Shown: piece by piece, positions 8,181 through 62,608 of the stretch | How the letters are laid out: each line of letters opens with the position of its first letter | Position numbering within the stretch: the first letter of the stretch is position 1 | Assembly (NCBI RefSeq): GCF_963506605.1 | Contig: NC_083288.1 | Coordinates: 26,970,001-27,034,000, forward strand | Direction: 5' to 3' | Source of the DNA: Zootoca vivipara | Lineage: Eukaryota | DNA length: 64,000 bases | Notes under the pieces: model-generated | What the model was told of the DNA's origin: nothing | The model's database searches: none | The model's input: only the letters and a program-made list of their open reading frames with translations | Translations under genes and position numbers: made by a program

Positions 8181-8824
8181 TATTTCCCTGTTATCATTTC
8201 TGGAGTTCACAGTGCCTTTTTACAGTAACTTAAGCAGATTTCGCACAAACAGAAGCTGTAGTATGCATACTTTTTTTTAAAGTAACAATAATGTCCTGCC
8301 CTCTCCCTCACACACAAAAAAAGCGTTCAAGATAGGGGTTTGTTGGCATGAAATGTGAACAGGAAGGTTAAGTTGCAGGTTGGCTTCACAAAAAACTATG
8401 GAATATTTTACTTAGCCACACTTCCTTTCCTTTTGCACCGCAGTGATACTGTTGGCTGAACAGCCATAATCTCTGGGAATAGTAATGTAAATATCCTTGT
8501 AGTGTCTCCTAGTGTTAACGGGTGATGCCGTAGTTCTTTTTCCAGCCTGGGAAAGAGCCTTATGTTAGCCAAGTATCTGGAGTCCCAAGGGATCAGTCAG
8601 ACTCAGTTTGACACTAAGCTACTCACCCAGAGCAATTGTTATTCCATGATCAAATCACACTTTTGCTCTATGATGCACTAAGTCCACATGACAGGGAAGC
8701 TTCTGGGACGACATTTTCAGACAAATGTCCTTGTGCTCGGGAAGAAGGCCTCCATTGTTTCGCTGCAGGCTGCTACTCATCCTTGCCTGGCTAACTCTGA
8801 CTCACCTCCTGTGTGTGCTCCTAG

Positions 8825-8977
8825 ACTTCCAAAGGACAACCCCCGGCGAGTGATGTGGTTGGAGAATTGTCGGAGGAAGGACTTGACCGGCGAGGGTCTT
8901 TGGGACCCTGCCTCCAAGTATGTTTACTTTTGCTCCAAGCACTTTGAGAAGAGTTGCTTCGAACTGGTGGGCACCAG
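8825..8977 (+). CDS. THAP7: THAP7 coding exon 2 (THAP zinc finger)
   Basis: ctag| then LPKDNPRRVMWLENCRRKDLTGEGLWDPASKYVYFCSKHFEKSCFELVGT then |gtaggt. Contains the THAP P, W and CxxHF residues; phases 2-2. Confidence 0.95.
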
Positions 8978-9821
8978 GTAGGTCACTGGAATATGAAAGG
9001 GCATGAACAGCTAAGCAGAATTAAAACAGGTGGATATGGTCACAATTGGACAATTATTAGATTATACATTTGACATTGGCAAAGATGCTGCTTGCAGAGG
9101 GGGTGGAGAAGGGAGCTAGAAATGACTTTAAGGCCAGTCGGGAGGGGGAACAGTTGTTGAAGGCCAGAAAGCTGTCATGGAAGACCCGCCCTGTGTGGTT
9201 TATTCAGGGTGACCAGCTTTCAATTTAAATATTTTTTTTGGGGTGGGGGCAGAATCCAATGTGTGCAGATGCTGAAAAGATAAACCTAGACATATCCAAG
9301 TCACCAAGTCCTGTTAGATCAGTTTGATAAAGTAATGAAGGTGTGTAAGGATCTTAAGTAATATGTATTGGGAAAAGCCTCTTCCTGAGTCCTTAAGTAT
9401 CACCGAGAGCAGATAGTAGTGGGCAATAATGGTCCGACTCATTATAAAGCAATTTTATATCTTCTTAGGAGAATAAGCAAGTGTGGGAGTGCTGTATTGT
9501 GGAGGTCACGCTGGATTATCTCCATTGAGATTGGTGGGGAGAAATCCAAATTTAAGCAGCATGTGTTACTTACAAAGTTCATTCTGTTTATTTGGGACTC
9601 CGCACATGCAGTTGCACGTGCAGAGATCTAGAGGGGAAACATTGCAATGCAGAAATATAACTAGCTAACTGCAGGTGCAGCTAGGACCTCCCAGAACCCA
9701 GCAGCTCCCCAAAAAGAGATGTCTTGCTGCAAGGTCTATAGTTCAGATGACCTTCCAGAGAAGGATGCTTGCCTGTCTGAAGCCAGAGATGGCTAATGAG
9801 CACTGATGCTCCTTTTTGCAG

Positions 9822-9938: not shown

Positions 9939-10285
9939 GTGAGTACTGTCCTTCTGGCTTCTCTTGCCATGCTCCATGGAAGTTCTTCCCTCCCTCCCTT
10001 TACCATCCTATGAATGTTAATTATGTTTAGTGGGGCTTGCTTCTTCAGAAGTGTGCACACAGAAATGCTGCCTTACTGCAGGGTTAGGGAAGCTGCCGCC
10101 CTCCAGTTGAAGTTGGACCACAGTTGTTGCTCCATGCTGGCATGCTTGGGTTATTTCAGGAAACGTCTGCAACAAGGACATGTCCAATTTTGTCCTCTTC
10201 TGCTTGTCACTGCACCTGTGATAAAAGTGTGGCAGATCTTCCCCCTGGGTTCCTGTCTGACCAGGGTTCTGTTTCTTGCCTACAG

Positions 10286-10841
10286 CTGCAGCCGTTGCCT
10301 GGAGGAGGAGTTGAGTCCTTTGTGCATGGACATCTCATGCTTCCCTGCACAAGAGCTGTCAAGCCCTGGGGCTGCTCCCACCAGCAGCGAGCCTCGAAGC
10401 CAGCCTGACCTCCCGGGGCCGGCGTCAGAGAGCCTGGCCACCCTGTCAGACATTCCCCTGGAACAGTCACCCGCTGCTACTGGCCAGGAAGGAGCTTCTC
10501 CTTCTCCGGCCCTCCCGGAGCCTGTGGGGGATTCATCCCACCCCGTTTCCCTCTCTCTCTACATGTTGCGCCTGCCTCCCCCAGCTGGGGCTTACATCCA
10601 GAACGAGCACAGCTACCAGGTAGGCAGTGCCTTGCTGTGGAAGCGGCGAGCGGAGGCAGCCCTCGATGCTCTGGGGAAGGCGCAGCGGCAGCTCCAGGCC
10701 TGCCGGCGCCGAGAACAGCGACTCCGCCTTCGGATCTGCGAGCTTCTGCGTGAGCGGCGGCCACACAGCGCCGAGGCACATCGACGGCTCAAGGAGCACC
10801 TGCAGGTCTTTGAACTGCAGCTCCTCAATGACCTTGAGTAA
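10286..10841 (+). CDS. THAP7: THAP7 coding exon 4 (HCF-1-binding EHSY motif, coiled coil)
   Basis: YMLRLPPPAGAYIQNEHSYQVGSALLWKRRAEAALDAL matches the THAP7 C-terminus. Best acceptor is gtttcttgcctacag (10285); in-frame alternatives exist upstream. TAA at 10839-10841; AATAAA at 11018-11023. Confidence 0.88.
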
Positions 10842-14135: not shown

Positions 14136-14577
14136 GGGGATGCACCAAAGAAACAGGTACGGACCCCTCAAGCTTTTGACAGGATCCCTGCTCTATTCAT
14201 ACGTTAATTAAATTTCTAATACACTTTACCAGGGCACTAAGAAAATAACAGCCCTGGCTCCCAGTATTCAGATACTTCCCTGTCTCATTTCTTTGGCAGA
14301 GTGGATCAGTCTTACCAAACTGAAAATCAGCAAAGCAGAAGAACATCAAGAAAATGAAGCTCCTGTTAAAGTTACTCACGGATTATTTCCTCTTAACCAG
14401 CTGGCAACCTAATGTATGCTTGTTTTCCTATAGAGCCAGAGCAGCTCGTTTTTTGAGAAAGGTTTCTAACTTTCTTTTAGCTATAGAAACTTTGAAGGAA
14501 GCAACAGTGTTCAAAGTCTGTGCTTTGAACTTTCAACTTAGGGAGGGGGGCAGAATTCTTCCTCTCTTCAGCCAAAC

Positions 14578-14693
14578 ACTTCCTGAGACTGGATGGAAGG
14601 AGAGAGAGTTTTACTCTTCCCCGGAACTTTCACTTTCATTTGCTGTGCTATGCCAAAGAGGACAACCGCAGCGAGGGAGGAGGAGTGGTGAGT
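14578..14693 (+). promoter_or_regulatory. Putative interferon-responsive promoter and first exon of the PYD-B30.2 gene
   Basis: ETS core acttcct at 14578-14584. TTCCCCGGAA (TTC-N4-GAA) at 14617-14626. ISRE/IRF-E aactttcactttcattt at 14625-14641. Donor gtg|gtgagt at 14688. Confidence 0.55.
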
Positions 14694-15104
14694 CCCCCCC
14701 CCCAAAGTCTGAACGTTCCCTCAAATTAAATGTTGAGCCTGGGCTGTTGACTTGACAGGGGCCTTGCTTCTTGTTCTGTAGATACAGTACATGTCTCTTT
14801 TGTCCTCCCGTCTTTGCTGATCAAACAGGTTTGGCAGGGTTTACAGAATAATAAACCTGAGCCAGGGCTGCGGAAGCAGGGTGATATACTATTTATAATA
14901 TGCAATATATAAACCTGTGTCAGGTGGAAGTGGGATTGGGCACCCACAGCACAACTTCTGCACTAGAAAATAAATTTGTTGTGCTGCAATTCTAAACCTT
15001 ACCTGGGGCAGATAAAAACATTGGATTCAATATAATTTACTCCTGAATACGGACATAGTTGCTGCAAAGTTTTTTTTTCTTGCTTTTGCTGTAATTTTCA
15101 CAGC

Positions 15105-15194
15105 CATAGCTGCCAAGTTTTCCCTTTTCTCGCGAGGAAGCCTGTTCAGCATAAGGGAAAATCCCTTTAAAAAAGGGATAACTTGGCAGCTATG
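15105..15194. mobile_element. Second copy of the same hAT MITE, opposite orientation
   Basis: Same TIRs. TSD ttcacagc/atcacagc. Internal sequence is approximately the reverse complement of 14047-14135. Confidence 0.85.
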
Positions 15195-15911
15195 ATCACA
15201 GCTTCCCCTCTAAGTTTTCCCCCCCAACAGACCTTGCAACTTGACCTGAATGTACCCAGTATGTACACATAATGGAGTACTCTGTGGTATACTTGATACT
15301 CACAGAGCATGAAAATGCATACTTACAGAGCATGAAAACGCAGGACATCACTTCTACTACAGAGCTCTGTGGAGATAGAGCATATTTGTTTTGTAACAAA
15401 AGGAAAACTGAGCAGAATGGGGCCAATCTATTTTTTATTATGTGACTCCTATGGTACCTATTTAGCATCAATTTTGGGGTGAGGTTGGGCTTTAGAGGCA
15501 GGTAGCTGATATTTGCAACCACTAGTTCCCCTTGACATTATGCTTTTTTCCAGAAACTTGTCCCTCTTACTGTATTGTTGGATGAGCATTTTAGGAATGT
15601 GGTATTGTTTGTTGTTTTATTCTTTTCAATGGCTTTTAATTGGTTTCCCCCATTTGCATTTTGTCATTAAGTTGCTTATACTGTACACTATAATAATAAT
15701 AATAAATGGGTTGAGGAGATTCCTTTTATGAAACTGAAATCATTCTGTAAAGTTATTGTGCATCCTTCAGCTCACAGATCGTGACACTTTGCAGAAACTG
15801 GTCAGCCCCGTCTTTGCTTCCTGTATCCAATCAGAAGAGAATTGACTCACCTTCCTTCTCCTAGAGGCCATTTTTCCTCCTTCTGCAAACCTTTGACTGG
15901 GAGGGGCCAAG

Positions 15912-16188
15912 ATGTCCAACAGTGTCTGCTGCAAATTGGTTGACTACTTGGAGGAGCTCACAGAGGAGGAATTCAAGAGATTTAAGATGCACCTTGAAGA
16001 CTACCCACTGGAGCAAGGCTACAAGCCGATCCGGCACTGTAAGATCGAGAAGGCCGACCTCATTGAAATAGCACGGCTCATGGTCAGGGCCTACGAGGAG
16101 GCTAAAGCATTGCAGATGACAGTCAACATCCTCGACCGAATAAATAGAAAGGATCTGTCGGCAAAAGTCAAACAAGAGATGCCAGCGT
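15912..16188 (+). CDS. PYD-B30.2 gene coding exon 1: pyrin (PYD/DAPIN) domain, NLRP3-like
   Basis: MSNSVCCKLVDYLEELTEEEFKRFKMHLEDYP...EKAD...LM...KALQMTVNILDRINRKDL is a PYD signature. Acceptor at 15864, Kozak gccaagATG, phase-1 donor GTAAGT at 16189. Confidence 0.92.
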
Positions 16189-17370
16189 GTAAGTAAACAA
16201 AGGAGCCCCACCCTTCCAGGCTTCGTAGGTCTCTTGTCCAATTTGCTGTGAATCCTGCGCTTCATCCGTGTATCAAACATGCGTGAGAAATGCCTATAGC
16301 CTTTGCCCACGGAATTCTGGGAACTGCAGTTCAACCATCACAGAGCTACGAACTATGGCTCCCATAATTCTTTGGGGGGGGAATCTGTGTGCTTTAAATG
16401 TATGGTGTGGTTGTGAGCACAGACTGTGCACCAAATGGCCTTCACTTGTCTGCTGTGTGCCTGGGTAGGTAACAATGGATGGCCATCCATCTGTCATGGA
16501 AGTTTTAGCTGAGATTCCTGCATTGCAGGAGGGTTGGACTAGATGACCCTGCGGGTCCCTCCCAACTCTACGATTCTGAGATTCTAAGATGAAAACCCGT
16601 CTCTCCAATGCAGCAGTATAGGGCCAGCAACAGGCCTTGAAAGGCCTCATACTTGCAATGGAGCCCTTGTCTTCCACCCCTGGTGAGCTCACCACTGTCC
16701 ATGATATCTCAAACCCATGCTTGCCTCCCTGGCAGCAGAGATTCTCTCTGGCGACATCACTGGGACCGCTACTACCTCAATGCAGTTGACTAGGGCTTAG
16801 TAGCAGCAGTGGCTACCTGGCCCAACCTCCCGTGTTTAAAAAGGCGGCTGCATGCTGTTCCCTGCTCCATATTGTGTGATGGAGCCTCACAGTTGCAGGA
16901 AGCTGTACTAGCCTTGTGAAAAAGTCCAAGCACATATGGAGGCTTAGCCAATGGGCAGCTACATACCACCATATTTGTTATGTGCTTTTGGGGGGCTGTG
17001 GGCCCTGGCAGATCCAAGACTATGCCAGCTGTGACACTGGGCCTCCAGCAGTTTCTTATTGTGATATTTCTATGTGCCTTCCGATGATGGGTGCAACTCT
17101 GCCCACAGAACAGCCTCAGGCTTTACACTGCACATTTCTATTCCATGAGCCCTATATCAATGCTGCAAAGTCTGGAGGAGCCCTAACTGTTGCAATGCTA
17201 TGCAGATCCTGATCCTATTTGCATCAGTTTATTGATGGACTTCCGCAAAGGGGCACTGTTCTTGTGCATGCGGTGTAAGAGGAGCAAAAAGGGGATGGGA
17301 AAACGTCTATCTTTCTTTTATTTACTTATTTTTTAACAAGAGCATCCTTTTTTCTTTCTTTTTTCTGCAG

Positions 17371-17481
17371 TTTTCCTGCAGCCTACGAAAGCAGCGGCCT
17401 CGACCAGGGAAGAAAAAAGAAAACGGGAAGAAAGGTTGCTGTCCAGTATCACTGACAAGTTTTGCGGGACTCAAAAGAAAG
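17371..17481 (+). CDS. PYD-B30.2 gene coding exon 2: charged linker
   Basis: Long polypyrimidine tract + ctgcag acceptor. 111 nt, phase 1-1, open: FFLQPTKAAASTREEKRKREERLLSSITDKFCGTQKK. Donor g|gttagt. Confidence 0.72.
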
Positions 17482-17917
17482 GTTAGTTCACGTCGGGGAG
17501 AAATAGAAGAAGACGCCTCACCCCGGTTTGGTTCCCCTTTATCACATTATACACAGCCCAACAAGACAACAACAAGAATCCCACGACAGCATATGAATCA
17601 ATCTGGTTAACCTGATTCAAAAATACACCCACCCACTCACACAGAATAACAATTCTCACTACAGCCAACCAAAGACAACCAGCCACACCCTAAGCCACAC
17701 ACAACCTCTCTCACCACCAAGGAAATACAACAAATGAATAGTAAGAGAACCCATACAAATAACGCTGACACAACCCCTTACACACCCTAAGTAGAATAAT
17801 AGAAGCATAACCACCCCATCCACCACTCCCCCCTTCCACCCCTTTTTCATCTTCCTAATTGTTTAAACCAATTCATAAACCAAGAACTCATACATTGACC
17901 ACTAATAATGAAACATA

Positions 17918-18281
17918 GGGACACGGGTAGCACTGTGGTCTAAACCACTGAGCCTAGAGCTTGCCAGTCAGAAGGTCGGCGGTTCGAATCCCCGCGATGG
18001 GGTGAGCTCCCATTGCTCGGTCCGAGCTCCTGCCAACCTAGCAGTTCGAAAGCATGTCAAAGTGCAAGTAGATAAATAGGTACCGCTCCAGTGGGAAGGT
18101 AAACGGCATTTCCGTGCGCTGCTGTGGTTCGCCAGAAGCAGCTTAGTCATGCTGGCCACATGACCCGGAAAAACTGTCTGCAGACAAACATCGTCTCCCT
18201 CGGCCAGTAAAGCGAGATGAGCGCTGCAACCCCAGAGTTGTCCGCGACTGGACTTAATTGTCAGGGGTCCCTTTACCTTTT
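17918..18281 (+). mobile_element. Sauria SINE, full length
   Basis: gggacacgggt...ggttcgaatccc (B box)...ctttaccttt tail. 12-bp TSD taatgaaacata. Confidence 0.9.
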
Positions 18282-19712
18282 TAATGAAACATATGTTGTA
18301 GATATTTTCCAACATTGTGCTATTTTTGTGATATACATATGACATGAGAAAACTTGGTATACTTATTTATATAACATTATTCTTGTTTATAAAACCCAAT
18401 AAAAGAAAGAAAGAAAGAAAAAGAAATGTAGGTAGGTAGGTTAGTTGCCAGCAGATGAATCGAGGTCCTTCCATCCAGGCTGAAAGCCGGCAGCCACTGC
18501 AAAATGAATTTTTCTGCAGATGTGCTACTGCTAGCCGTCCAGAATTTGGAACCACCCCTTATGCAATAGAAGGAAGGAAGGCTTTCCACCTACCTCACAG
18601 CTAGATTTGATTGCCATGTGTTGTGGACTAGGAACAAAGACCTTTTTTCTTCTGCCTTTGATCCAAAAGTGCTATTGTTTGAGCCTCTGGGAGGATAAAC
18701 AACTTTTTTCTGTATTAGTGACAATTTAAGAAGCCCCTCCCTACCTCAATAGTATCTGACCTCATATTATTTATTCTAATCTATGAATAGATCCTAAAGA
18801 TGCAATTCTTTTAAGGCAGGTTTATGTCCATATATACAAATATTTTGGAGGGAGGTTTTGAGTAGGATGTAGGAAATAGCAGCATAGGTTCTTTCCCCAG
18901 ATCTCCAAAATGCTTAGTGTTATTTTTAAAGGGAGGTAAAACAGTAGTTTTGGAATGTAATTTAATGTTACTAGCAGTTACATGGATTGGTAGAGCAGGA
19001 AGATCCCAGAATCTCCAGCTGCTTCAGTGTCTCTACACAGATGTGGGAGATCACATCATTTAACAAAGTTACCTTACTTTTTGAGAAGTAGTTTTAGAAA
19101 TGAACTTAACAGTTTTATTGTGATTTAAGCTTTGTACCCTTCTAGAATGGTAATTTTGAAGATAATGTGCAATCTTAAGTTATATTTAACCATATTATAA
19201 TTATCACGGCCTTCTTCTTAACAGCAATAATATAGTTATGAATGTGATTTTGTAATTATCATAATAATTACATCACAAAAATATACCGGTACCTGTAATC
19301 TTTCAAAGAAGGCCTTCCTGGGTTCAACCTGAAACTATGCCCAAATCTACAGTTTGTTTGTTTAAAGAACTTATCCTAGGAAGGAAAATAGTACATGTTT
19401 TCTTCTGGTTAGCAAAGGTACCATTAAAGAACATTCACTGTTCCTAAAATGTTGTTCTTCACCTTGAGATGTCCGTGCTCTGGAAACTGTTACCACTAAA
19501 GCAGCAGAACAGGTATGGGGAACTGTTGGCCCTCCAGGTATTGCTGAACTACAACTCACATCAGCGTCAGGAAGCACGGCCAATGACCAAGGATGATGGT
19601 AGTTGTAGTTCAGCAACATCTGGAGGGCCAAAGGTTCTCAACCCCTACAGTAGAAAGTCATTTCTTTAGCTGGTAAAATTGTTTGCAAACTATTCTCCGT
19701 CTCTGTTTTTAG

Positions 19713-20221
19713 TGGAAGTCACACTGGATCCCAAGACAGCCTTCCCTACCCTCATCCTTTCTGAAGATCGGAAAAGTGTGTACCTGGGCAGCCAGGCCCA
19801 GGTTCTTCCTGACAACCCTGAGCGCTTCAATTTTTCGCCCTGTGTCCTCGGAGCAGAAGGCATCACCTCTGGGACTATGGAATGGGTGGTAGAGGTGGGC
19901 AAGGCCAAAGCATGGGCCATCGGTGCAGTCCGGGAATCCATAGGGAGAAAATGGTACCAATATATCAAAGTTACTGAGGGGTTTTGGGCGCTGCAGCTGA
20001 TTGAGGGAGAATACATGGCCTCTACCTCTCCTTCCACTGTCCTTCCGCTGTGGAAATCCCTGCGACGGATCAAGATACGCCTGGAGTATGATTTTGAAAT
20101 CCTCTCCTTTTATGACGCCGACTCCATGGAACCTATTTTTACTTTCAATTATCCTTTCTCTGAGAGGATGTTTCCCTTTTTCCAGGTCTGGGATACTGAG
20201 ATCCCCCTGAAAATCTCATAA
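19713..20221 (+). CDS. PYD-B30.2 gene coding exon 3: PRY/SPRY (B30.2) domain
   Basis: tttttag| then VEVTLDPKTA..LILSEDRKSV..LPDNPERF..PCVLG..WVVEVG..WAIG..LSFYD..IFTF..F.E.MFPFF. This is the typical phase-1 terminal exon of TRIM/butyrophilin-type genes. Stop at 20221; AATAAA at 20583-20588. Confidence 0.93.
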
Positions 20222-20592
20222 GGGCACATTTTAAAGATGTCTTAGGCTGTAATCCTACACTAGGGCTGTGTACCACATGTTCCTGTTTGCTCCGCAGCCG
20301 GTGTGCTTCCTGTTGTGTATTGAGTCAAAGGATTTTATATCTGTATTATTATTGTCTGTATTTGCATTAGGATAAAGTAACTGCCTTTTGGTTCCAGAGG
20401 GTACAGCTACTATTGGTTCATTTAAGCTGCCCTATTTGGATCCTCTGTCTTATTGGTTTTCTCCAAAAGGCAGCACTGTGATTGCCTGATATTGTTCCCT
20501 CCAAAATGTATCCCTTTCTAGCTAGTCCCCTGTCCCTATAAATGTAGCTTTGCTCTCCTCAGACCTCAGTCTTGTTTACTTTAATAAAGAAG

Positions 20593-23999: not shown

Positions 24000-24944
24000 T
24001 CAATGACTTTCAGAAACGGTATTCTTCCCTATTGCTTTAGCCAGGGCTCCTTTGACTTCCTTGTTCCTTAGGCTGTAGATTATAGGATTGAGCATCGGAG
24101 TAACAACTGCATAGAAGAAAGCCAGCATCTTGTCCTGGTTGGGCGAAGTGTTGGATTTGGGGCTCATGTAAGCAAAGATTGCTGTGCCATAGCAGAGGGC
24201 GACCACCGTCAGGTGAGAGGTACATGTGGAGAAGGCTTTCTGACGGCCTCCTGAAGACTGGATAAGTAGGATAGCACGGATTATATAGACGTAGGAAAGT
24301 GTTACCACAATACAGGGGGTGACCAGCACAATGGACCCTGTCACCAAAAACAGAATCTCATTGACGGAAGTGTCTGAACAAGCAATCTTGATAACAGCCA
24401 GGACTTCACAGGCAAAGTGGTTGATGATGTTGGAGCTGCAGAAGTGAAGGCGCACAGTGAACACCGTATGCAGGAGAGCATTGAGAAATCCAGCTGTCCA
24501 GGATGCTAGCACCAACTGCATACACACTGTCCTGCTCATGATGATCTTGTAATGCAATGGATGACAGACAGCCACATATCGGTCATAAGCCATGGCTGCC
24601 AAGAGGATAAATTCAATGCTTCCGAAGGCGAATGAGAGGTAGAGCTGAGCCATGCACCTGTTGTAGGAGATGGTCTTGGAGCTGGTCAGGAAATGGATTA
24701 ACAACTGAGGCACCACACTTGTTGTGTAGCAGATGTCTAGGAAGGACAGATGGCTCAGGAAGAAGTACATGGGTGTGCTGAGCTGTGAGTCTATGTGGAT
24801 GGCCACGATGATGAGTGTGTTACCTGTCAGGGTGATGAGGTACATGAAAAGGACCGCTGCAAAGAGGTACAGGTTGGTGTCTCGATCTTTGGAAAACCCC
24901 AGAAACACGAAATCCAGGGCAATTGTTTGATTGTATTGCTCCAT
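24000..24944 (-). CDS. Olfactory receptor, class II (OR2/OR13-like), intact, 314 aa
   Basis: Single-exon 7TM ORF with N-glycan site NQT and motifs LSTPMYFFLSHLS, MAYDRYVAVCHPLHY, KAFSTCTSHL, PMLNPIIYSLRNKEVK. Confidence 0.95.
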   Translation of the reverse strand: MEQYNQTIALDFVFLGFSKDRDTNLYLFAAVLFMYLITLTGNTLIIVAIHIDSQLSTPMYFFLSHLSFLDICYTTSVVPQLLIHFLTSSKTISYNRCMAQLYLSFAFGSIEFILLAAMAYDRYVAVCHPLHYKIIMSRTVCMQLVLASWTAGFLNALLHTVFTVRLHFCSSNIINHFACEVLAVIKIACSDTSVNEILFLVTGSIVLVTPCIVVTLSYVYIIRAILLIQSSGGRQKAFSTCTSHLTVVALCYGTAIFAYMSPKSNTSPNQDKMLAFFYAVVTPMLNPIIYSLRNKEVKGALAKAIGKNTVSESH

Positions 24945-39033: not shown

Positions 39034-39441
39034 AAATGGGTCTACTATAAGCATGACTAAATCTGGATTGTTGAGTGGGTAGTGGTGGGGTGTTTTTTTT
39101 TATGCTGCCTCTGACTTTTGTGTCTCCTACACAATTACTCATTGCTTCCCTTCTGCCTTTCTCAAGCTTTTAATGAAATTTGAGGGCTTCCAAGAATCAT
39201 CCCCCTCTCCCCACTCCCTGACTTCTTCAACTCCTCCACCTTGCAGTTTTTAGTTTGCTTCTAATATTGTGGGGTTTCCCCTTATTCTTATTTCCCTCAT
39301 TATTGCTTAGCAGCCTTGAGGCTTCAGCAATAATACAAGATGTAATCCTCAATATAAATTATACTCTTGGGTCAGGTGAGGCTATTTACTTCCAATCTGT
39401 TTTCCTGTTTCATTCCCAGGAAAGCCCTTAGAGGAGATAAC

Positions 39442-40377
39442 ATGGGCAGAAGAGAGAATGAGACTACTGTGACCGAATTCATCCTGCTGGGCCTCTCGAG
39501 TAACCCTCAGACGAAGATTGCCCTCTTTGGTCTCTTTCTACTCATCTACTTCATCACTGTGGTGGGCAACGGTCTCCTCCTCCTGCTTGCTGTAGTGGAT
39601 CCCCACCTGCACACCCCCATGTACTTCTTCCTTGGCAACCTGTCTTTCCTTGACATCTGCTATACTACCAGCACCATCCCTCAGATGTTGGCTCATTGCC
39701 TGTCAGCCAAGACCACCATTTCCCATTCTGGCTGTTTTGCCCAAATGTACATCTCCCTCTTCTTGGGGACGACGGAATGCCTCCTGCTGGCAATGATGTC
39801 CTACGACCGCTGGGTGGCTGTTTGCAACCCCCTGCGCTACAATACCATCATGAGCAATAAGGTTTGCACTGCTATGGCAACCATTTCATGGGGCAGCTCC
39901 TTCCTCCTGATCCTGGTACCTTCTCTCACCTCACAGGCCTCTCTATGTGGGCATAATGTTATCAACCACTTTCTGTGTGAGGTCCAGGCTATGCTCAAGT
40001 TGGCCTGCTCAGATACTAGTGGAAACCAGTTGATCATGTTTGCCAGCAGCATCCTTACTCTGCTTCTTCCCTTCGGCTTCATCTTGGTCACCTACGCCCG
40101 TATTATCACCACTGTGTTGAAAATGCAATCCACAGAGAACAGGGCCAAGGCCTTCTCAACCTGTAGTTCGCATCTCATGGTGGTCACCATTTTCTATGGA
40201 ACAGCCATGTCAATGTACCTACAGCCTCAGACCAAGACATCCTCAGATCTAGACAAATACATTGCCATATTCTATTGTACCATCACACCCATGTTGAATC
40301 CACTGATTTACAGCTTAAGGAATAAGGATGTGAAACAAGCTTTCAAGAAAGTGACAGGGAGGAAGAGAGACCTCTGA
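39442..40377 (+). CDS. Olfactory receptor, class II (OR13-like), paralog 2, 311 aa
   Basis: Same motifs as paralog 1, with 10 amino-acid differences. Confidence 0.95.
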   Translation: MGRRENETTVTEFILLGLSSNPQTKIALFGLFLLIYFITVVGNGLLLLLAVVDPHLHTPMYFFLGNLSFLDICYTTSTIPQMLAHCLSAKTTISHSGCFAQMYISLFLGTTECLLLAMMSYDRWVAVCNPLRYNTIMSNKVCTAMATISWGSSFLLILVPSLTSQASLCGHNVINHFLCEVQAMLKLACSDTSGNQLIMFASSILTLLLPFGFILVTYARIITTVLKMQSTENRAKAFSTCSSHLMVVTIFYGTAMSMYLQPQTKTSSDLDKYIAIFYCTITPMLNPLIYSLRNKDVKQAFKKVTGRKRDL

Positions 40378-45126: not shown

Positions 45127-46074
45127 GTGGTGAGGCAGGTGGGAAACCAAACCGCAACAGCAACATTTGTGTTCCTGGGCTTCTCCAGCTTCCCGGAGCC
45201 CCAAGCCCTGTTCTTCCTCCTGTTTCTGACCATGTACATCACCACCTTGCTGGGCAACACTCTAATCCTGGTGACCGCATGGCTGGATTCTGGCCTCCGT
45301 ACACCCATGTACTATTTCATCCAGCACCTGTCATTCCTGGACATCTGCTACTCCTCCGTCACTCTGCCCCACATGCTTAAGAATCTGTTGACAGAGACAC
45401 AGACCATCTCCATTCCAGGCTGCCTGGCCCAGCTTTACTTCTTGGTGACTTTTGTAGGGGTCGAGTGCCTCCTCCTGGCCGTGATGGCATATGACCGATA
45501 CATCGCCATCTGCCACCCACTTACGTACACCATCTTCATGAACAGGAAGCTGTGTACCCAGCTGGTGGCAGCTTCCTGGGCCTGCGGCTTCCTCAATTCA
45601 GTCCTGCACACGGCCATGACCGCTCTCCTGCCCTTCTGTGCCTCTCACAACCTGGACCATTTGTTCTGTGACGTCCCCCAGCTGCTCAAGCTGTCTTGCG
45701 CAGACACATTCCCCAACCAAATCACCTTGCTGGCAGTCACCCTGCTGCTCGGCGTCAGTCCTTTCCTTTGCATTGTGGTTTCCTACGTCCACATCGTGGC
45801 AGCCATCTTGAGGATCCGTACTAACCGAGGCCGCCGCAAGGCGTTCTCCACCTGCACTTCGCACCTCACAGTGGTCACCTTGTTCTATGTCACCTGCATG
45901 TTCAATTATAACAAGCCCAGCGCCAGCCATTCTGTATATTTTGACACCTTGGCAACTGTGCTCTACAACGTTGTGACGCCAATGCTCAACCCTATCATAT
46001 ATTGCCTGAGGAACAAAGAAGTGAAGGACGCCGTGAGGCGTTTGCTGCACCCCAAGACGCCGTCCTCTTTCTAG
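45127..46074 (+). CDS. Olfactory receptor, class II (OR5V/OR1-like); full-length ORF with no ATG before TM1
   Basis: Motifs NQT, LRTPMYYFIQHLS, MAYDRYIAICHPLTY, KAFSTCTSHL, PMLNPIIYCLRNKEVK. Start is uncertain: GTG codons, with the first ATG at 45232. Confidence 0.85.
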   Translation: MVRQVGNQTATATFVFLGFSSFPEPQALFFLLFLTMYITTLLGNTLILVTAWLDSGLRTPMYYFIQHLSFLDICYSSVTLPHMLKNLLTETQTISIPGCLAQLYFLVTFVGVECLLLAVMAYDRYIAICHPLTYTIFMNRKLCTQLVAASWACGFLNSVLHTAMTALLPFCASHNLDHLFCDVPQLLKLSCADTFPNQITLLAVTLLLGVSPFLCIVVSYVHIVAAILRIRTNRGRRKAFSTCTSHLTVVTLFYVTCMFNYNKPSASHSVYFDTLATVLYNVVTPMLNPIIYCLRNKEVKDAVRRLLHPKTPSSF

Positions 46075-48075: not shown

Positions 48076-48786
48076 TCAGCATTCAGTATTTCCTGCCAGG
48101 TAATGTGAGATCGCATTGCGCACCTCCTCGCCTCCCGACTCACTGCTGGTTTCGTAAAAATGGCAGTCCTCGTTATATGCTGCCAACAGGACGTGCTCAG
48201 AGATGTCCACACCTTCGGGAACGGCGTGCCCCTTGGTCTCACAAATATTGTGCAGCACGACACACGCAGTGACCACTGCCAAAACGTTCTCCTCTGCCAC
48301 TGGGAGCCTCGCAGTGAGGCAACGCCACCTTGCCTTGAGCCTGCCAAAGGCCTGCTGGACCACGCTGTGGCAGTGGTTGAAAGTCCTATTGTAGATGGTC
48401 TTCCTCTGGTCCAAGGGGCCTCCGTAGGGCTTCATGAGCCACTTCCGCATAGGGTAGGTGCTATGGGCGAGTATTAGAGGTGGGATCTCCACGCCCTGCA
48501 TGTTGATAGTCGGGTTCCCTGGGACAAAGGTGCCCTCGTCCATAGCCTGGCACAGCGCAGATTTGCGGAAGATCTGCACGTCATCGTGTTTCTTCCCGCT
48601 CCATCCCACTTCGATGTTCGTGAAACGGCCGGTGTGGTCGGTTGTCCCTTGAAGCAGAATGGAACAGAAATTCTTTGGCTTGTTGCACTCGTCTCCTGGA
48701 CCTGTAGCGGCTATTATGGACAGATGCGTCAAGTCCATCGCGCCAACGCAGTGAGGGAATCCCATCTTCCTGAAACCATCCATGAT
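48076..48786 (-). CDS. HARBI1/ALP1-like (PIF/Harbinger transposase-derived) gene, coding exon 2 (DDE_Tnp_4-type domain)
   Basis: ttacag| then IMDGF..GFPHCVGAMDLTH..SILLQGTTDHTGRF..GWSGKKHD..ILAHSTYP..WLMKPY..VVQQAFGRLKARWRCL..ACVVLHN. Phase 0; stop at 48076. Confidence 0.9.
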   Translation of the reverse strand: MMDGFRKMGFPHCVGAMDLTHLSIIAATGPGDECNKPKNFCSILLQGTTDHTGRFTNIEVGWSGKKHDDVQIFRKSALCQAMDEGTFVPGNPTINMQGVEIPPLILAHSTYPMRKWLMKPYGGPLDQRKTIYNRTFNHCHSVVQQAFGRLKARWRCLTARLPVAEENVLAVVTACVVLHNICETKGHAVPEGVDISEHVLLAAYNEDCHFYETSSESGGEEVRNAISHYLAGNTEC

Positions 48787-49719: not shown

Positions 49720-50266
49720 TATAGTTATAGGTAAAAAGTTGGGACAGATGCCAAGAATAATATCAATTAGCATATGTTCTTACGCTATCAATATTATTCT
49801 TGCCATCTGTCCAACTTTTTACCTATAGCTATAAGCATAAGTTTAAAGAAGATTGGAAAATGTTTATTGAATATATGGAAAATAATAGTGTATAGCTGAA
49901 AACGCTGGCAGCGTTAAGATAAATTCAACAGTGTAAATAAGTTTTGATGGATGCAGTAATGGAATACTGATTGGTATAGCTTTCCTTAAAGTATGCAGGG
50001 GTTTAAGATATGTAAAATGAAGCATGGAAAAGAAAAAGGGCAGACGTTGATATCTTAAGGATGTAAAATGAGTATTTGAAATGGTAAAACAGAAAAATTA
50101 ATAAAAAATATAGTAATAATAACGGTAGGTATTTTCCCTTTTGCAATGTGCAACTCAACACACTCACACACCCTTCTAGACAATGCAGCAGTGTGGCACA
50201 GCAGTGTTAGATTGAACCTGTGCAACTGCAGCAACTTTTTAAAAAACCCTTAAAAAAAAACTTTAC

Positions 50267-50869
50267 CTTCCAGTAGTCGCCCAAATAGATTGTCTTCTGG
50301 ACGAGCAGGTGCTTGATGGCAAAGCACACCTCCAGAACGATCTCTCCCACCGTCGACCTCCCGACTCCAAACTGCGCGGCAACTTCGCGGTAGCACTTCA
50401 GATTAGAAAGCCACCACACGGCGATAGCGACCCGCTTCTCGACGGGGATGGCTTCCCGCATGATAGTTCTCTGCCTCTGGAGCTGGGGTCGGAGGACGTC
50501 CGCAATTTCGAAGAGGGTCCCTCGGCTCATCTGGAAGCTCTCGATCCACGTTTCGTCGTCCCGGGTCCCCAGCATGGAACGCTCCCACCAATGCTGCTTG
50601 GTGGGGCAGACCCACCAGCGCCGCAATTTCGGCCCGCTTTCCAACAAGGTGACGATAGGAACCATATGTCTGCAGCTCCTCCTCCTCTGAATGATGCGCC
50701 TGGTCCTCAAGATGTGGTTCTGAATCGCCCGCCCTATCAGCACTCTCCTTCTCTGCCGCCTTCTGATACTCATAAGATAGGCGTTACATCGGCTGATCGC
50801 TGAGTGGAGCACGGCAACCAATACCTCAAGGTGTAACTTCAGCAGCTGCAGCAACACATGAGGTTCCAT
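50267..50869 (-). CDS. HARBI1/ALP1-like gene, coding exon 1 (Arg-rich leader + HTH region)
   Basis: MEPHVLLQ...WWERSML..W.ESFQMSRGTLFEIADVL...IPVEKRVAIAVWWLS...YREVAAQFGVGRSTV. Acceptor cctttgcgcag lies just before the ATG. Donor AAG|gtaaag is phase 0. Spliced product is 437 aa. Confidence 0.88.
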
Positions 50870-51205
50870 GCTGCGCAAAGGAGTGGAACGGTGTTGGAAG
50901 TCACAGGAGCAACGTTGAACGGAGGAGGTTTTTGAGCAGAGGTTGGGTGACCTTCTGTCATGGATGCTTCAGCTGAGATTCCTGCATTGCAGCAGGTTAG
51001 AATAGAGGTGGATCTACACAAAGAGGAAAAAAAACCCCACTATAAATAAGTCAGAAATTAAATCATTATAACAAATGGAGTGAAAAAACCCGCAATGGAA
51101 AATCGTGAAGATAATTCTTTGCTCTCCAGCGCCATCTAGTGTTGCATGTTTATAACGCATTCAAAACACAGGTTTTTTTTTTTTAACTAATGTAGCTGAG
51201 TCCTA

Positions 51206-59804: not shown

Positions 59805-60711
59805 ATGACGCAGGTAGAATCTATCAATGGCACATCTGTGTCTGAGTTTGAGCTTGATGGGTTCCTCAACTTGGGCGACTATGGCATACTTCTCTTTGCC
59901 ATCTTCTTAGTGATCTACCTGCTCATCCTCAGTGCCAATGCTCTCACCTTCAGCCTCATCTCTGCCACTCCTCGCCTTCACGTCCCCATGTATTTCTTCA
60001 TTGCTGTGCTGGCCACCTGGGAGGTGTTCTATACCACCGTTACCATGCCCAGGGTGCTGGTGGACCTTCTGAGGAGCAAGAAGTCCATTTCCTTCAGCAA
60101 ATCTATTTCTTCCACAGCGTGGGGATCTCAGAGGCCTGCTTGCTCGCAGTGATGGCTTACGACCGGTACTTAGCCATCTGCGCCCCGTTAAACTATATGA
60201 CCAAGATGACGCCCCAACTTTGCATTCAGCTCGTGCTGGGGTGCTGTGTGTGTGGTTTTGCATGTCCTTTGCCGGAGATTGTTCTGACTTCCAGGTTGCC
60301 CTTCTGTGGGCCTAGTCATATAGATCATATATTCTGTGACTTCCCTCAGGTGATCAGTCTCGCTTGCACAGACATATCGACCAACATCATGTTGGATTTC
60401 GCCCTCCACACCATCGCCATCCTGGCCCTCATCTTTCTCATCCTCCTCTCATACATGAAGATACTGAAAGTCATTGTTAAGATCTTTTTTCCACTTGCGC
60501 CTCCCACCTCATTGTGGTCCTTACTTTTTTTGGAACTACTGGCTTCATGTACATGCACTTGACATGGATGGGATCGGGACGTTATGACAAGATCGTTGCA
60601 GTCATCTATGCCTTTTTTATCCCTCTTTTCAACCCCATCATCTATACTCTGAGAAACAAAGAAATCAGGGATGTGATCAGAAAGATCGTTGGTTTCCCTG
60701 CTTTGGCATGA
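59805..60711 (+). pseudogene. Olfactory receptor pseudogene (OR6-like)
   Basis: OR motifs (NGT, LHVPMYFF, MAYDRYLAICAPLNY, FSTCASHL, PLFNPIIYTLRNKEI) are split over three frames. Frameshifting deletions lie near 60098 (loses the 'GCxxQ' segment) and near 60485 (loses 'GRxKA'). Confidence 0.9.
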
Positions 60712-62480: not shown

Positions 62481-62608
62481 NNNNNNNNNNNNNNNNNNNN
62501 NNNNNNNNNNNNNNNNNNNNNNNNNNNNNNNNNNNNNNNNNNNNNNNNNNNNNNNNNNNNNNNNNNNNNNNNNNNNNNNNNNNNNNNNNNNNNNNNNNNN
62601 NNNNNNNN
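62481..62608. other. Assembly gap (N run)
   Basis: 128 Ns. Confidence 1.

Follow-up and report, generated by a model that had tools for sequence, protein, structure and literature searches.

The 64,000-nucleotide stretch of the Zootoca vivipara genome analysed here (contig NC_083288.1 of assembly GCF_963506605.1, positions 26,970,001–27,034,000; hereafter the window) carries a transcribed, single-copy gene of four exons, whose 298-residue cytosolic product is composed of a pyrin domain (PYD), a short linker and a PRY/SPRY (B30.2) domain. The protein is neither a TRIM, a butyrophilin nor an NLR. It belongs to an old and conserved family, mislabelled and unstudied, that squamates, tuatara, turtles and caecilians have all kept intact and that probably provides input to the ASC inflammasome pathway. 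What is new lies in how the protein is built, how old this design is and how little notice it has received; the database entries and the individual domains were already familiar, and this is not a new kind of molecule.

The three coding exons are localised to 15912–16188, 17371–17481 and 19713–20221 of the forward strand, and all three are in phase 1 in the window sequence. The first opens with the ATG at 15912 and contributes 92 codons of PYD up to position 16188, where GTAAGT follows; the second (111 nt) is flanked by AG and GT; the last (509 nt) is preceded by AG and terminates in a TAA stop. The window exons, searched one by one, matched the Pfam families PYRIN (3.6e-26), PRY (1.1e-22) and SPRY (3.3e-14), and the 36 in-frame linker residues returned zero Pfam matches. 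Their translations agree at every residue with the database protein P0226 (XP_034992091, Zootoca vivipara), in which the two split codons encode F and V and which was used for the full-length analyses. RefSeq names this protein "E3 ubiquitin-protein ligase TRIM7". No second PYD or B30.2 copy was found in the 64-kb window.

An initial annotation, made from the letters of the window alone, had proposed that PYD, linker and B30.2 are encoded by one transcript, and RNA from three studies bears this out. In run X1, a 1267-nt RNA contig joins 14573–14685, 15770–16188, 17371–17479 and 19711–20336 (reads mapped on 14500–20450); in run X5, from a separate study, a 710-nt contig links the three coding exons; and raw RNA-seq reads of X20 and X21, from a third study, cross the GT..AG joints 16188/17371 and 17481/19713. 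The spliced RNA contained no further coding exon. The X1 contig identifies a non-coding exon 1 at 14573–14687 (+), approximately 1.3 kb farther upstream, whose 5′ end is the start of the contig and not a mapped transcription start. Intron 1 runs from GT (14688–89) to AG (15769–70); the aligner reported a "TG..CA plus one C" joint at exon 1 because of a T>C difference at 14686. Exon 2 (15771–16188, +) contains 141 nt of 5′ untranslated region (UTR) with a TGA in frame ahead of the ATG at 15912, followed by PYD codons 1–92 and the first base of codon 93. Exon 3 (17371–17481, +) encodes the 37-residue linker, which features an EEKRKREE cluster, an amphipathic helix and a conserved end, ..DKF.G..KK. 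The coding part of exon 4 (19713–20221, +), joined in the RNA, encodes the complete PRY/SPRY domain and the TAA. The 3′UTR spans 20222–20336 (+) to the end of the X1 contig; farther on, a repeat that begins near 20311 confuses the read depth.

Several signals named in the initial annotation need correction. The Kozak context of ATG 15912, described there as good, has an A at −3 and a T at +4. The polyA signal did not hold up: neither AATAAA nor ATTAAA occurs from the stop to 20583, and the first forward-strand AATAAA, at 20583–20588, is a candidate only. The interferon-stimulated response element (ISRE) and kB motifs reported as upstream are situated in intron 1 and the 5′UTR; the promoter is not immediately before the ATG, as the transcript begins ~1.3 kb up. 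Within exon 1 we identified a motif of the interferon regulatory factor (IRF) element/ISRE type, GAAAGTGAAAGT (14626–14637, −), which adjoins the palindrome TTCCCCGGAA. Across the 64 kb, for which 0.2 exact matches to GAAASYGAAASY are expected, it is the only one, and the transcript contig has its 5′ end ~55 nt away. This IRF-type element in the first exon suggests that expression of the PYD-B30.2 gene may be interferon-inducible.

The RNA also differs from the window at several positions, under the same species label. In the B30.2 exon, the X1 contig carries L246P, D264Y and P270L together with one silent change (at 20061, 20114, 20133 and 20188), and L246P is the only one of these differences in the raw reads of X21. 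Exons 1 and 2 show one silent change only (16028). This suggests either that amino-acid polymorphism is concentrated in the C-terminal part of the B30.2 domain or that lineages within the species differ. Intronic and flanking repeats with very high RNA depth were observed at 15097–15295, 16490–16688, 17883–18280, 19475–19673 and 20311–20450; their reads continue into unrelated sequence, and they are interspersed elements expressed elsewhere, outside the PYD-B30.2 transcript.

The composition of the protein sets it apart from several larger architectures that contain one or both of its domains, in agreement with the initial annotation. A tblastn search of the 64-kb window, introns included, with four NLRP3 proteins identified no NACHT or LRR sequence, the PYD exon being the sole match, and no FISNA was detected in the window. 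The NACHT NTPase and LRR domains of an NLRP protein are thus lacking. Likewise, no RING or B-box exon was found in the 64 kb, the Zootoca TRIM39-like protein matching the B30.2 exon alone, and Pfam searches of the protein left RING, B-box and coiled coil all unmatched, as opposed to what a TRIM E3 ligase requires. The N-terminus is a PYD instead of the Ig-like ectodomain and transmembrane segment that precede the B30.2 domain of butyrophilins, and the B-box and coiled coil that separate PYD and B30.2 in pyrin (MEFV/TRIM20) are replaced by 37 linker residues only. The RefSeq identity as TRIM7 was also rejected at the level of the binding site. TRIM7 residues N383 and R385 are essential for its C-terminal-glutamine pocket (PMC9394474). 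The TRIM7 segment FDTNTRVLA aligns to FNFSPCVLG in the lizard protein, in which N383 is replaced by S and R385 by C; the residues P172 and C173 of this segment form a PC pair that is invariant in the PYD-B30.2 family. Because N383 and R385 are not conserved, the RefSeq name is misleading in function too.

Comparison with structures in the PDB places the PYD with NLRP proteins. Its best match was NLRP3 (71.6 bits, E 5e-19), followed by NLRP4, NLRP9 and NLRP12; pyrin scored 36.7 bits, with ASC just behind. The HMMER alignment with human NLRP3 contains the common motifs CKL, YLE.L, FKMHLEDYP, EKAD and INR.DL, and both the PDB ranks and the tree described below assign the domain to the NLRP3 type, as the initial annotation had proposed. 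The B30.2 domain scored highest with BTN2A2 (137 bits) and TRIM7 (133 bits), and TRIM11 and BTN3A1 also ranked above pyrin (103–107 bits, 107 being its best score), which upholds the earlier assignment to the TRIM/butyrophilin type. It is 43–48% identical to the B30.2 domains of TRIM7, TRIM39, TRIM27 and butyrophilins and has the same fold. The AlphaFold (AF2) model of the protein reached a mean predicted local distance difference test score (pLDDT) of 70.5, with a confident PYD (75–93) and SPRY core (78–89) and a poor PRY and linker; a linker helix at residues 105–123 has pLDDT under 50. Foldseek matched the model to the B30.2 structures of BTN3A1, TRIM7, TRIM21 and pyrin. Similarity to NLRP3 was undetectable in the linker exon, and a linker profile of the family matched nothing beyond the family, whether behind NLRP3 PYDs or ahead of TRIM B30.2 domains. 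By sequence comparison, the nearest relatives are the mammalian NLRP3 PYD for the PYD and the TRIM7/TRIM39/butyrophilin group for the B30.2 domain; pyrin is nearest for neither on similarity ranks, the trees containing no pyrin sequences.

Using the B30.2 open frame, then a caecilian match and then a 21-sequence alignment as queries, we found ~45 full-length PYD+PRY+SPRY proteins of 285–311 residues. Their lepidosaur sources are lacertids, an amphisbaenian, skinks, agamids, iguanians, geckos, Varanus, many snakes and tuatara; the others are six turtles and two caecilians. An ESM Atlas cluster of 68 members carries the same three Pfam domains. Pfam analysis of the window exons and of the orthologues shows that the lizard protein shares this short tetrapod architecture (~285–311 residues, no other domain). 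In a word-seeded search, the architecture was not found among the top matches from birds, crocodilians, mammals, frogs or salamanders. The expectation that pipelines would call such proteins "pyrin-like" was wrong: apart from TRIM7, the names in use include TRIM39-like, TRIM7-like, butyrophilin-like and erythroid membrane-associated protein-like. As anticipated, a literature search found no description of the PYD-B30.2 family or its function. According to a survey of inflammasome genes, the earliest pyrin is mammalian, sensors of the pyrin and AIM2 types are lacking outside mammals, ASC was lost in birds and Podarcis possesses NLRP3 (PMC11258412). Because Podarcis has NLRP3, the PYD-B30.2 gene exists beside NLRP3 and not instead of it.

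Across 25 lineages, the PYD and the B30.2 domain were conserved to about the same degree and the linker less so: mean column entropy was 1.07 for the PYD, 0.98 for the B30.2 domain and 1.67 for the linker, with hardly any indels. The charged linker with KRKR emphasised in the initial annotation is present in the lizard, but only lepidosaurs have the KRKR cluster; in turtles this position is acidic, and snake paralogue A has deleted it. The conserved part of the linker is the amphipathic stretch with the end ..D(K/R)F(F/C)G..KKVEV. Snakes have two paralogues on one contig (P0022 and P0028 in Thamnophis, P0016 and P0033 in Candoia), one of which has a shortened linker. In lacertids (P0210, Podarcis; P0087, Lacerta), a 244-residue ASC-like "pyrin-like" protein and a 353-residue protein with two PYDs are encoded on the same chromosome as the orthologue.

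In a maximum-likelihood tree of 59 B30.2 domains, the family forms one clade (support 99/97), sister to the TRIM7, RFP, TRIM39 and butyrophilin domains of tetrapods. The B30.2 domain of the window falls inside this clade, with Rhineura and other squamates, and the family topology, (caecilians,(turtles,(tuatara,squamates))), follows the species tree. Because caecilians share the architecture with an orthologous B30.2 domain, the fusion predates amniotes, and these trees indicate that it happened once, no later than the split between amphibians and amniotes. The initial annotation had envisaged a reptile graft; with caecilians, turtles, tuatara and squamates all sharing the architecture, the fusion is neither reptile-specific nor recent. 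The PYD-B30.2 proteins of teleosts form a fish-specific clade in the B30.2 tree and look like an independent fusion.

The PYD tree (92 columns) was sampled without pyrin and without squamate (lacertid) NLRP3, and the search for PYD representatives was dominated by multi-PYD fish proteins. In this tree, the family PYDs of amniotes group with mammalian NLRP3 and NLRP4/9 PYDs (98/93), outside of which are the alligator and softshell-turtle "NLRP3", coelacanth NLRP3, ASC and the caecilian family PYDs. A constraint uniting all family PYDs was not rejected (approximately unbiased (AU) test, p = 0.10). A constraint uniting the PYDs of mammalian NLRP3 with those of alligator and turtle "NLRP3" was rejected (AU p = 0.0005), this grouping having been chosen post hoc. 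The proteins involved in the discordance are P0126, P0154, P0109 and P0129 versus P0171 and P0198. Either the alligator and softshell-turtle "NLRP3" proteins may be paralogues, or a PYD exon may have moved between genes. A bolder proposal, which we think unlikely as a whole, is that no reptile PYD, that of the sauropsid proteins annotated as NLRP3 included, would be nearer to the PYD of mammalian NLRP3 than the family PYD is. If this held under full sampling, the mammalian NLRP3 (and NLRP4/9) PYD exon would derive from this gene lineage or locus, and the PYD-B30.2 protein would act as a ligand-templated ASC sensor, with a role in reptiles and caecilians that matches the one of pyrin and PYHIN proteins in mammals.

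For the function of the protein, we give about an even chance to a minimal ASC-coupled sensor that follows the logic of AIM2 by analogy, with its PYDs clustered by a ligand of the B30.2 domain. In such a scheme, the B30.2 domain would serve as the ligand-recognition module and the PYD would deliver the signal. With neither a NACHT domain nor a coiled coil to oligomerise it, the protein would depend on a multivalent or locally concentrated ligand to gather its PYDs, and the clustered PYDs would nucleate ASC filaments and so lead to activation of caspase-1. Expression could be interferon-inducible via the IRF-type element at the first exon. The conservation of the B30.2 domain is even and free of indels across the family, which speaks for a conserved ligand more than for an arms race of the capsid type. 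On its own, the PYD of NLRP3 seeds ASC specks, and the mutations with the strongest loss of ASC nucleation in the human NLRP3 PYD are E15R, K23E/K24E and M27E (PMC9106292). The alignment places E14, K22/R23 and M26 of the lizard PYD at the positions of NLRP3 E15, K23/K24 and M27. ASC genes (PYD+CARD) are present in squamates and caecilians. A complex prediction for the lizard PYD (residues 1–92) with the Hemicordylus ASC PYD scored 0.13, which we count neither for nor against binding.

A number of observations weigh against such a sensor. The NLRP3-like interface residues vary in the family, colubroid snakes having E at K22 and caecilians N or T at M26. The B30.2 domain lacks a C-terminal-glutamine pocket of the TRIM7 type, and RNA depth was low in the sampled runs. 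Because crocodilians, mammals and frogs have ASC and no family member was found in them, the PYD-B30.2 family would be dispensable for ASC signalling. Finally, a monomeric PYD with a bulky domain attached could equally cap ASC or NLRP3 filaments. This last point leads to the main alternative, a negative regulator or decoy, whose PYD would bind the PYDs of ASC or NLRP3 while its B30.2 domain blocks filament growth or recruits another partner, damping the inflammasome. We consider this role less probable, though it deserves real weight. It would suit the missing oligomerisation module, the suggested interferon-type inducibility as feedback control, and the closeness of the PYD to that of mammalian NLRP3, given that POPs closely copy the PYDs they inhibit. 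However, a complete B30.2 domain strictly conserved for ~350 million years is more than a steric cap requires, and the isolated NLRP3 PYD nucleates ASC instead of blocking it (PMC9106292).

The resemblance to pyrin raises the question of descent, namely whether the gene is a non-mammalian counterpart or ancestor of MEFV/TRIM20, of the same lineage, that predates or lacks the B-box and coiled-coil exons. The end domains are identical in kind and order, and the B30.2 domain of pyrin is a strong PDB match. Both genes also have the PYD in the first coding exon and the B30.2 domain in the last, and the lizard gene borders an olfactory-receptor cluster much as human MEFV lies among olfactory-receptor and zinc-finger genes. 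The PYD, however, scores almost twice as high with NLRP3 as with pyrin, four proteins (BTN2A2, TRIM7, TRIM11 and BTN3A1) outscore pyrin for the B30.2 domain, albeit in similarity ranks and not phylogeny, and pyrin is reported first in mammals (PMC11258412). We thus hold a pyrin lineage to be improbable. Least probable by far is an annotation or splicing artefact, whereby the protein would represent only a piece of a larger NLR or TRIM gene or one of its minor isoforms, or the product of a decaying pseudogene. Phase 1 throughout would let exon skipping from a larger gene keep the frame, and some database models miss exon 3 wholly or in part (P0240, P0010). Against this, the RNA contigs of two studies contain only these exons, from the non-coding first exon to the 3′UTR, a stop in frame precedes the ATG, the 64 kb harbour no NACHT, LRR, RING or B-box exon, and intact orthologues of the same length occur in dozens of species. 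The artefact is largely refuted by these data.

The gene is followed directly downstream by a cluster of olfactory-receptor genes, at 24000–24962 (−), 35425–36435 (+), 39367–40377 (+), 45127–46074 (+) and 59805–60562 (+), two of which were tested and matched Pfam 7tm_4. The pair at 35425 and 39367 consists of nearly identical tandem duplicates, each 336 residues long, and the one at 59805–60562 is split across two frames and looks like a pseudogene. This neighbourhood resembles human 1q44 around NLRP3, but human MEFV also lies near olfactory-receptor genes, and we treat the resemblance as a lead only. Upstream of the gene are open frames at 8682–8978 (+) and 10014–10838 (+): one ends in a stretch like a THAP zinc finger (..FCSKHFEKSCFE..), and a frame of 275 residues, unmatched in Pfam, has a charged tail that resembles a coiled coil. 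Both may be exons of a neighbouring gene. On the reverse strand, 48079–48783 (−) and 50210–50878 (−) comprise an open frame of a Harbinger-type transposase (DDE_Tnp_4, Pfam 1.9e-21) and a second long frame without a Pfam match. A run of N at 62481–62608 marks an assembly gap.

Surveys of inflammasomes outside mammals seek mammalian sensors by name, and the PYD-B30.2 gene has been hidden under ligase and butyrophilin names. A compact protein of these two domains, retained for ~350 million years in lizards, snakes, tuatara, turtles and caecilians, is small, easy to express and a candidate minimal ASC sensor or regulator templated by a ligand. It offers a tractable system for how a PYD is switched on without an NLR or coiled-coil scaffold and for what the conserved B30.2 pocket recognises, and the unexpected closeness of its PYD to that of mammalian NLRP3 bears on how NLRP3 came to be assembled.

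Among characterised systems, pyrin is similar in layout, with an N-terminal PYD that signals via ASC and a C-terminal B30.2 domain in one cytosolic protein. However, pyrin spans ~780 residues, and its two domains are held apart by a long phospho-regulated linker together with a B-box and coiled coil, where the lizard protein has 37 residues. The likeness to NLRP3 is restricted to the PYD, for which it is the best PDB match, with common motifs and common ASC-nucleating residues; FISNA, NACHT and LRR are missing from the lizard gene, and its linker exon has no detectable NLRP3 similarity. TRIM7, TRIM39 and TRIM27, as well as butyrophilins, are alike in the B30.2 domain, whereas the lizard protein has neither the RING, B-box and coiled coil of the former nor the Ig ectodomain and membrane span of the latter. 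The teleost "pyrin-like" proteins (318–596 residues, an Atlas cluster of 76 members) contain the two Pfam domains in identical order, but their PYDs and B30.2 domains both fall in fish-specific clades and their linkers are longer. PYD-only proteins POP1-4 are likewise small, descend from the PYDs of inflammasome proteins and modulate the assembly of ASC; they are primate-restricted and have no second domain, in contrast to the complete, conserved B30.2 domain of the lizard protein. The proposed logic is that of the AIM2-like receptors (PYD + HIN), which also consist of two modules, a PYD and a ligand-binding domain, with no nucleotide-binding oligomeriser. Their binding domain is a different one and they are mammalian and unrelated by descent, so that this resemblance is a functional analogy only.

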